Of a DNA stretch of 64,000 bases, positions 17,110 through 17,665 are shown piece after piece; positions within the stretch are counted from its first letter, which is position 1, and each line of letters opens with the position of its first letter. Under the pieces are notes generated by a model. That model was given only the letters and a program-made list of their open reading frames with translations, had not been told where the DNA came from and did not search any database. Source of the stretch: Kudoa neothunni (lineage: Eukaryota; Animalia; Cnidaria); assembly GCA_964304625.1 (NCBI GenBank), contig OZ199838.1, positions 14,813,907 through 14,877,906 of the forward strand. The letters are read 5' to 3'. A program made the translations under genes and the position numbers.

Positions 17110-17665
17110 TTATTGTCTTTCACCACGGATACGTCTGGCGAGTTGAATGTCTCTTGACATTATGGTAACCCTCTTACCATGAATGGCGCATAGATTGGTA
17201 TCCTCAAAGATTCCAACTAGATAAGCTTCGCATGCCTCCTAAATGAATGAAACATAATAACATTGGGTGTATAGTAACAAGAGTGAGAGCATGTGTCGGT
17301 GTTGAAGGAACATCAAAAATCCAAAGACGACCCCTAATGGCAAACACACAGACACGCAATCAATGGCCAATAAATCTACGTACTTGAAGAGCTGCAATGG
17401 CAGAAGCTTGGAATCGGAGATCGGTTTTGTAATCCTGTGCGATTTCTCTGACAAGACGCTGGAAGGGGAGCTTTCTGATGAGCAATTCTGTGGACTTTTG
17501 GTAACGTCTGATCTCACGTAAAGCAACAGTTCCAGGTCTGAACCTATGAGGTTTCTTAACTCCTCCCGCAGTTGGAACACCTTTCCTAGAGGTTTTCGTG
17601 GCGAGTTGTTTTCGCGGAGCTTTTCCACCGGTAGACTTTCTAGCAGTTTGCTTAGTTCTTGCCAT
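17110..17665 (-). CDS. H3: Histone H3, divergent replacement-type (H3.3-like) variant; 2 coding exons (17665-17384, 17238-17110)
   Basis: [42 protein letters not shown]...ASAIAALQ|[43 protein letters not shown] 145-nt GT-AG intron follows Q93. No histone stem-loop seen after the stop. Confidence 0.97.

Follow-up and report, generated by a model that had tools for sequence, protein, structure and literature searches.

The window analyzed here, a 64-kb stretch of the Kudoa neothunni genome (C1:14813907-14877906), contains a two-exon histone H3 gene on its minus strand. The gene is probably an expressed, spliced, H3.3-like histone of a lineage that has lost Polycomb and in which the sequence context of K27 has drifted lineage-wide. 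The altered K27 context is itself a lineage-wide feature, as are K122R and the loss of S28; all three are common to both 139-aa H3 genes of the genome and to related species. Histone H3 is among the most conserved of proteins, and ARKS at K27 is regarded as all but universal among animals. The assembly comprises 40,260,978 bases in four contigs at ∼30% G+C; as published, it has 40.2 Mb and an N50 of 12.0 Mb and was taken from yellowfin-tuna data (Weber, Paulini and Blaxter 2025, PMC12239612).

Structure, expression and ancestry of the window H3 gene

Exon 1 (17384-17665, minus strand) runs from the ATG (17663-17665) through Q93 (codon CAA, 17384-17386), its 94 codons encoding Met and residues 1-93. 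It is followed by a 145-nt intron (17239-17383, GTACGT...TTTAG) with GT..AG ends, in phase 0 after Q93, and by exon 2 (17110-17238), in which positions 17113-17238 encode E94-Q135 ahead of a TAA stop codon (17110-17112). The exons were translated and searched separately rather than as a joined protein, and they match the Pfam Histone profile (PF00125) collinearly, exon 1 at profile positions 2-84 (8.6e-24, 84.6 bits) and exon 2 at positions 85-122 (1.3e-16, 61.4 bits). The product has 135 residues after Met, matches the histone fold over its whole length, and is identical to fish H3 in tail residues 1-23.

Compared with fish H3.3-like (P0066) and H3.2-type (P0218) proteins, the window H3 carries A24T, A25S, S28G, A29V, T31 and A32 around K27, and Y41F, F78Y, S86A, SAIA at residues 87-90, L103I, A114G, P121S and K122R further along the chain. 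The list of substitutions from A24T to K122R in an initial annotation of this DNA, with its canonical residues 1-23, proved exact on this comparison, and C96 and A135Q are added to it here. The codons for residues 24-32 (17567-17593, minus strand) read TSRKGVPTA where canonical H3 has AARKSAPST/AT: the flanking residues A24, A25, S28 and A29 of the PRC2/Polycomb substrate are replaced, giving TSRKGV, while R26 and K27 itself are retained. The clustering of changes around K27 that had been claimed is supported statistically, with 6 of 9 residues changed within 24-32 vs 10 of 126 elsewhere (Fisher p = 7e-5). Codons 17152-17157 on the minus strand encode S121 and R122 in place of the canonical P121 and K122, and this SR pair is common to all Kudoa-type H3 sequences seen.

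Spliced forms of the gene were found in two runs (X5 and X6) of one 2019 study that bears a different organism label. Their contigs, of 426 and 446 nt, join the exons (17237|17383) with the intron exactly removed, and all eight listed differences from the window are synonymous third-position changes. The contigs continue on the 5' side for at least 31 nt beyond the ATG, which gives a minimal untranslated stretch of 17666-17696 (covered by the X5 contig), and on the 3' side for at least 37 nt past the stop codon, which gives 17073-17109 (covered by the X6 contig); no AATAAA-type signal lies within 310 nt 3' of the gene. K-mer depth is 146 and 19 for the spliced contigs of X5 and X6, vs 2.5 for the contig of the upstream flank. 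The run type was guessed as 'DNA?', and on account of this depth contrast, from which RNA is deduced, and of the exact GT..AG removal, cDNA of a close relative is the likeliest source, with a DNA retrocopy as the alternative. The joined contigs confirm the intron proposed earlier after Q93 and, taken as RNA, speak against a silent gene. In four runs of one host-labelled sample, probably the source of the assembly, the stretch is present as DNA. None of the stretch was found in the RNA-labelled runs of the host species (X16), in agreement with the remark in the genome paper that the host RNA reads mapping to the parasite are few (PMC12239612).

Two further observations concern the surroundings of the gene. 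Over window positions 17073-17837, the H3 contig of X5/X6 is ∼98% identical and the upstream flank ∼95% identical, and a very close relative of the Kudoa parasite is therefore present in the data set of another organism. About 1.5 kb downstream of the gene, at 14852-15671 on the plus strand, ORFs of 85 and 105 aa resemble pieces of an ISXO2/IS1595-type DDE transposase (...DESLLHGKRK..., ...YSDEWSAYN...) and mark a degraded transposon.

The ancestry of the gene is indicated by its intron. A fish H3.3-like gene (L048) has a GT donor (CAG|GTGTGT) right after Q93, its downstream exon not being seen in the fetched flank, and the intron of the window gene occupies this same H3.3 position, which supports the H3.3-type ancestry suggested on this ground in the initial annotation. 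The same ancestry had been argued from the absence of a 3' stem-loop. No histone 3' stem-loop (Rfam RF00032) lies within 1.5 kb of the window H3, but this marker is non-discriminating and was discarded, because none was found next to any histone gene examined (L001-L003, L007-L009, L011-L013) and a six-frame Pfam profile search of the genome found no SLBP RNA-binding domain. The stem-loop/SLBP system for histone mRNA ends is apparently absent from K. neothunni. Residues 87-90 (17393-17404, minus strand), the chaperone-selectivity patch that reads AAIG in H3.3 and SAVM in H3.2, had been cited as selecting CAF-1 vs HIRA/DAXX; as SAIA they are equidistant from H3.3 and H3.2. Residues 1-93 show 11 differences from H3.3 and 11 from H3.2.

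Like the animal H3.3 genes (H3-3A/H3-3B), the window gene is solitary, has a phase 0 intron after Q93, lacks a 3' stem-loop (a trait that does not discriminate here), and encodes I89 followed by a small residue 90, in a genome with HIRA-like, DAXX and ASF1 genes. Unlike them, it has T31, S87, A90 and C96 instead of S31, A87, G90 and S96, so that I89 alone matches the H3.3 signature; it also carries TSRKGV, Y41F, F78Y, P121S, K122R and A135Q and is without the first coding intron of vertebrate H3.3. From the intron after Q93, the solitary single copy, the small residue 90, and the HIRA-like and DAXX genes, we infer an H3.3-derived replacement-type histone, for which replication-independence and deposition by HIRA/DAXX are predicted. 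Because the signature residues do not match, we label it H3.3-like rather than file it as a member of H3.3.

Histone H3 genes of the genome and of related species

For the H3 inventory, exon 1 and the Pfam Histone profile served as queries against the whole genome. Four H3-type genes were found in the assembly, namely the window gene, two genes of 139 aa and one cenH3-like gene. Neither search detected an H3 gene with the canonical AARKSA anywhere in the assembly, so the window gene does not stand as an odd variant beside a normal H3. The cenH3/CENP-A-like gene fragment (C1:5040126-5040392; L007:1489-1782, minus strand) combines a divergent N-terminus with an H3-type fold (Pfam Histone, 9.1e-23). 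The window H3 is not centromeric, having a canonical tail and fold, with the cenH3-like gene at C1:5040126 separate from it.

The two 139-aa genes (C1:6944180 and C3:4112330) encode proteins that are identical to each other and 90% identical to window exon 1. Together with P0159, their orthologue from a third sample, they share with the window H3 S25, R26-K27, the absence of S28-A29, F41, Y78, S121-R122 (within MSRD in the K. neothunni copies) and the lack of a stem-loop. Unlike the window H3, they are intronless, have a three-residue insertion (GGAGGK), ARKT at K9 (S10T), Q86 and S90, and in the K. neothunni genome lack C110; their K27 context is SSRKTI in K. neothunni and SSRKTM in P0159, which has the same insertion. 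Residues 87-90 are SAVS in the K. neothunni copies, and SAVS or SAIS in the 139-aa paralogues across samples. By these comparisons the window H3 is the least derived H3 of the genome and the 139-aa copies the more derived. Two H2B genes lie ∼17 and ∼60 kb away from one of the 139-aa genes.

The Pfam Histone search also returned H2A, H2A.Z-like and H2B genes. An H2A gene at C1:10023206 ends in ...SQEV and is H2A.X-like, a second H2A copy at C1:10006445 is seemingly interrupted, an H2A.Z-like gene lies at C1:6764606, and the two H2B genes (C1:6927711 and C1:6885412) have long lysine-rich N-terminal extensions.

From another sample comes a Logan contig (L014, protein P0021) with an orthologue of the window H3 that reads TSRKAAPTI, encodes the exon-2 protein without any change and has its intron, of ∼33 nt, in the same position. 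The two genes are 76-80% identical in nucleotide sequence and saturated at synonymous sites (pS ∼0.8), and the proteins differ at only three residues (28, 29 and 32), all of them by K27. Counted amino-acid differences and pS are given here since Nei-Gojobori dN is inflated by the multi-step codon paths of serine, arginine and leucine. The two 139-aa copies of K. neothunni differ at 49 of 420 nt, every one of the 49 differences being synonymous, and their flanks are unrelated. Both H3 paralogue lines are under very strong purifying selection. The dN/dS check proposed in the initial annotation bore out constraint at saturated pS, the variation against L014 being confined to residues 28, 29 and 32.

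The presence of orthologues of both H3 lines in relatives indicates that the paralogue lines and the [TS]-S-R-K context are older than the splits of these species. R26 and K27 are invariant in five of five Kudoa-type sequences; S25 and P30 are likewise fixed, and residues 28, 29, 31 and 32 form the one relaxed spot. Among the 325 H3-like proteins fetched, 292 have AARKSA and ∼10% vary somewhere at 24-29 (e.g. ASRKSA, SARKAA, SSRKSV), the form [TS]SRK[AT] being confined to two Kudoa-type relatives. When named myxozoan H3s were sought by protein word search, canonical H3s came back in their thousands, and P0021 and P0159 were the only close relatives among them. The suggestion that the window gene might be a K27me-refractory variant is not supported by these comparisons, as the relatives and each of the three non-centromeric H3 genes have the altered K27 context, the S28 loss and K122R.

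Polycomb domains, retained chromatin factors and the drift around K27

The Polycomb inventory consists of six-frame Pfam profile searches of one whole assembly whose median exon is ∼112 bp, and the absence of PRC2 is to be read at that scope and for EZH and SUZ12, EED having no specific Pfam model. In this assembly we found no SUZ12 VEFS box, no EZH-type SET among the six SET genes found, no RAWUL of RING1/PCGF and no JmjC domain (PF02373), though SET, chromo, KAT11 and chaperone domains were easily found. The domains that define the PRC2/PRC1 system (an EZH-type SET with CXC, the VEFS box, RAWUL) were thus not detected in the searched genome, and the JmjC result suggests that the JmjC histone demethylases are lost or very divergent. 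Chromodomain matches fall in three CHD remodellers and four small proteins; the latter have a chromoshadow-like C-terminal region by eye and hence look HP1-like, and no Pc-type protein was seen.

A match to the preSET_CXC profile at C2:9728324 (E = 0.15) was rejected as EZH: it covers the Cys-rich end of a transposon ORF that also encodes an integrase. With its integrase core, Cys-rich tail and sub-threshold EZH2 preSET_CXC match, this locus (C2:9726824-9729895, L024) is a possible false positive in automated Polycomb inventories.

Where the initial annotation had left lost or rewired Polycomb as alternatives, the failure to detect EZH SET, CXC, VEFS, RAWUL or JmjC favours loss. The search for EZH, SUZ12, CBX, HIRA and DAXX proposed there recovered DAXX and a Hir1-like gene and gave no EZH-type SET, SUZ12 VEFS or Pc-type protein in the assembly. 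The window gene is also not a minor paralogue beside a canonical H3 with intact PRC2, as had been considered: the genome-wide list of H3 genes contains no canonical H3, and PRC2 is not detectable. Our literature search found no paper on PRC2, EZH2, SUZ12 or Polycomb in Myxozoa, and histones and Polycomb go unmentioned in the K. neothunni genome paper. That paper gives a BUSCO completeness of 40%, typical of myxozoans, and describes for myxozoans the loss of about two thirds of ancestral genes, the loss of DNA methylation and rapid protein evolution (PMC12239612).

Other chromatin factors are retained. The six SET genes, assigned by sequence, Pfam and PDB matches, comprise a SETMAR/EHMT/Clr4-like pre-SET gene, KMT2/SET1, an AWS-SET gene of the SETD2/NSD/ASH1 class, KMT5A/SET8, MYND-SMYD, and an ankyrin plus pre-SET G9a-like gene. 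The KAT11 domain of CBP/p300 (1.9e-40), CAF1A, CAF1B, the DAXX histone-binding domain and ASF1 are present. An absence call for HIRA was rejected: the Hira-domain model (PF07569) found nothing, but a Hir1/HIRA-like propeller was recovered by the CAF1B/HIR1 propeller model and then by PDB search, yeast Hir1 being its sole PDB match, so that such searches can evidently miss divergent domains. The CAF1A (p150) matches at C2:6583347-6583580 and C2:10334555-10334788 have identical scores and lie ∼3.7 Mb apart on opposite strands, as either a recent duplication or a retained haplotypic duplication. For K4, K9 and K36, writers and readers are present and the tail contexts intact; for K27, writers, readers and erasers were undetectable in the assembly and the context has drifted. 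The persistence of the K4, K9 and K36 contexts pointed out in the initial annotation is matched by KMT2/SET1, by SUV39/G9a-type enzymes with HP1, and by AWS-SET genes.

We propose, as the most probable course, that the writer PRC2, PRC1 and the JmjC erasers disappeared from the lineage, upon which the residues around K27 that are read by PRC2 and Polycomb-type chromodomains would have been left without constraint and drifted, the changed K27 context being a consequence of this release. K27 itself may have stayed for acetylation by the retained CBP/p300, and the K4, K9 and K36 contexts would be held fixed by the persistence of KMT2/SET1, SUV39/G9a-type enzymes and HP1, and AWS-SET. The window H3 would be deposited by the retained HIRA-like and DAXX chaperones, and the SAVS-type 139-aa copies would serve CAF-1. 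Against this proposal stand the miss of the Hira-domain model and the fact that the absence calls come from one fast-evolving, short-exon assembly; given the fast protein evolution of myxozoans, part of the drift may also be unrelated to Polycomb.

A broader form of the proposal, which we hold only tentatively, is that Kudoa, and perhaps all Myxosporea, discarded the whole Polycomb axis (PRC2, PRC1, JmjC) and then remodelled the second ARKS of every H3. HP1- and Pc-type chromodomains need a small alanine two residues before the methyl-lysine. With the fixed A25S this alanine would be gone, so that the retained SUV39/G9a-HP1 system could use no ARK site but K9.

It is also conceivable, if unlikely, that K27 is still methylated and used in silencing, through a divergent or unassembled PRC2 or another SET enzyme that tolerates [TS]-S-R-K, the motif having co-evolved with a rewired writer or reader. 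The invariance of R26 and K27 in the five Kudoa-type sequences would fit such a scheme, as would T/S24-S25, which are kept between species and not random; Kudoa has both a G9a-like gene and one of the SUV39 superfamily, HMM searches can miss divergent domains (Hira-domain vs Hir1-like), H3K27me3 occurs without PRC2 in Pristionchus pacificus, and K27me1/2 has been attributed to G9a (PMC11075575). However, residues 28, 29 and 32 vary freely between close relatives while the rest is frozen, which is the pattern of relaxation and not of a new fixed motif, and the assembly yielded no EZH SET, CXC, VEFS, RAWUL or JmjC, its small chromodomain proteins being HP1-like by eye.

We consider it improbable that the changes reflect generic fast evolution of a reduced parasite with no link to Polycomb, residues 24-32 being simply the most tolerant part of the tail. 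This would agree with rapid myxozoan protein evolution (PMC12239612), with the 10 substitutions outside 24-32, K122R among them, and with the variation of ∼10% of the 325 H3-like proteins at 24-29. It sits poorly, however, with extreme purifying selection (only three amino acids have changed although synonymous sites are saturated, and all 49 differences between the 139-aa copies are synonymous), with the concentration of changes at 24-32 (p = 7e-5), with the retention of ARK(S/T) at K9, where writers and HP1 readers persist, and with the specific coincidence of absent PRC2, PRC1 and JmjC. We give very little credence to the window gene being a minor or specialized (e.g. stage-specific) paralogue in a chromatin supplied almost wholly by the 139-aa copies, for although that form has two copies, one of them with two H2B genes ∼17 to 60 kb away, k-mer depth of the spliced contig is high in both X5 and X6, the window protein is almost perfectly conserved across saturated synonymous divergence, and HIRA-like and DAXX chaperones are retained. 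As all paralogues share the altered K27 context, the conclusion on K27 is independent of this last alternative.

The proposed Polycomb loss in Kudoa compared with known systems

Massive gene loss is the rule in Myxozoa, and a loss of Polycomb in Kudoa would extend this known trend and not establish a new principle. An animal genome with no canonical H3, in which the K27 context has drifted in all copies with K4, K9 and K36 fixed, would offer a natural experiment on the constraints that act on the H3 tail and on life without Polycomb in an extremely reduced multicellular animal. One practical consequence is that commercial H3K27me3/H3K27ac antibodies against the AARK-SAP context may miss Kudoa tails, and negative myxozoan blots would then be uninformative.

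Budding yeasts are reported to be without PRC2 and H3K27me3 (PMC8788455), and the H3 of the yeast Kluyveromyces marxianus (P0186) retains AARKSAP. These PRC2-less yeasts are like Kudoa in the absence of PRC2 and unlike Kudoa in keeping AARKSAP, so PRC2 loss permits, but does not force, erosion of the motif.

The closest animal parallel is a single published case, the nematode P. pacificus. Its EZH2 and EED orthologues are reported as missing, which the authors call the first such case in a multicellular organism, yet H3K27me3 persists without PRC2 (Brown et al. 2024, PMC11075575), so in Kudoa, too, K27 may be methylated by some other enzyme. Both are animals with PRC2 components missing. Unlike P. 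pacificus, for which the text consulted reports no change of the H3 tail (PMC11075575), Kudoa has a changed K27 context in every H3, and PRC1 RAWUL and JmjC are undetectable in its assembly. So far P. pacificus is the only animal for which a loss of PRC2 has been reported (PMC11075575). If the loss proposed here is true, the literature searched would make Kudoa a second, independent case among animals, and the first in which the substrate motif is eroded as well.
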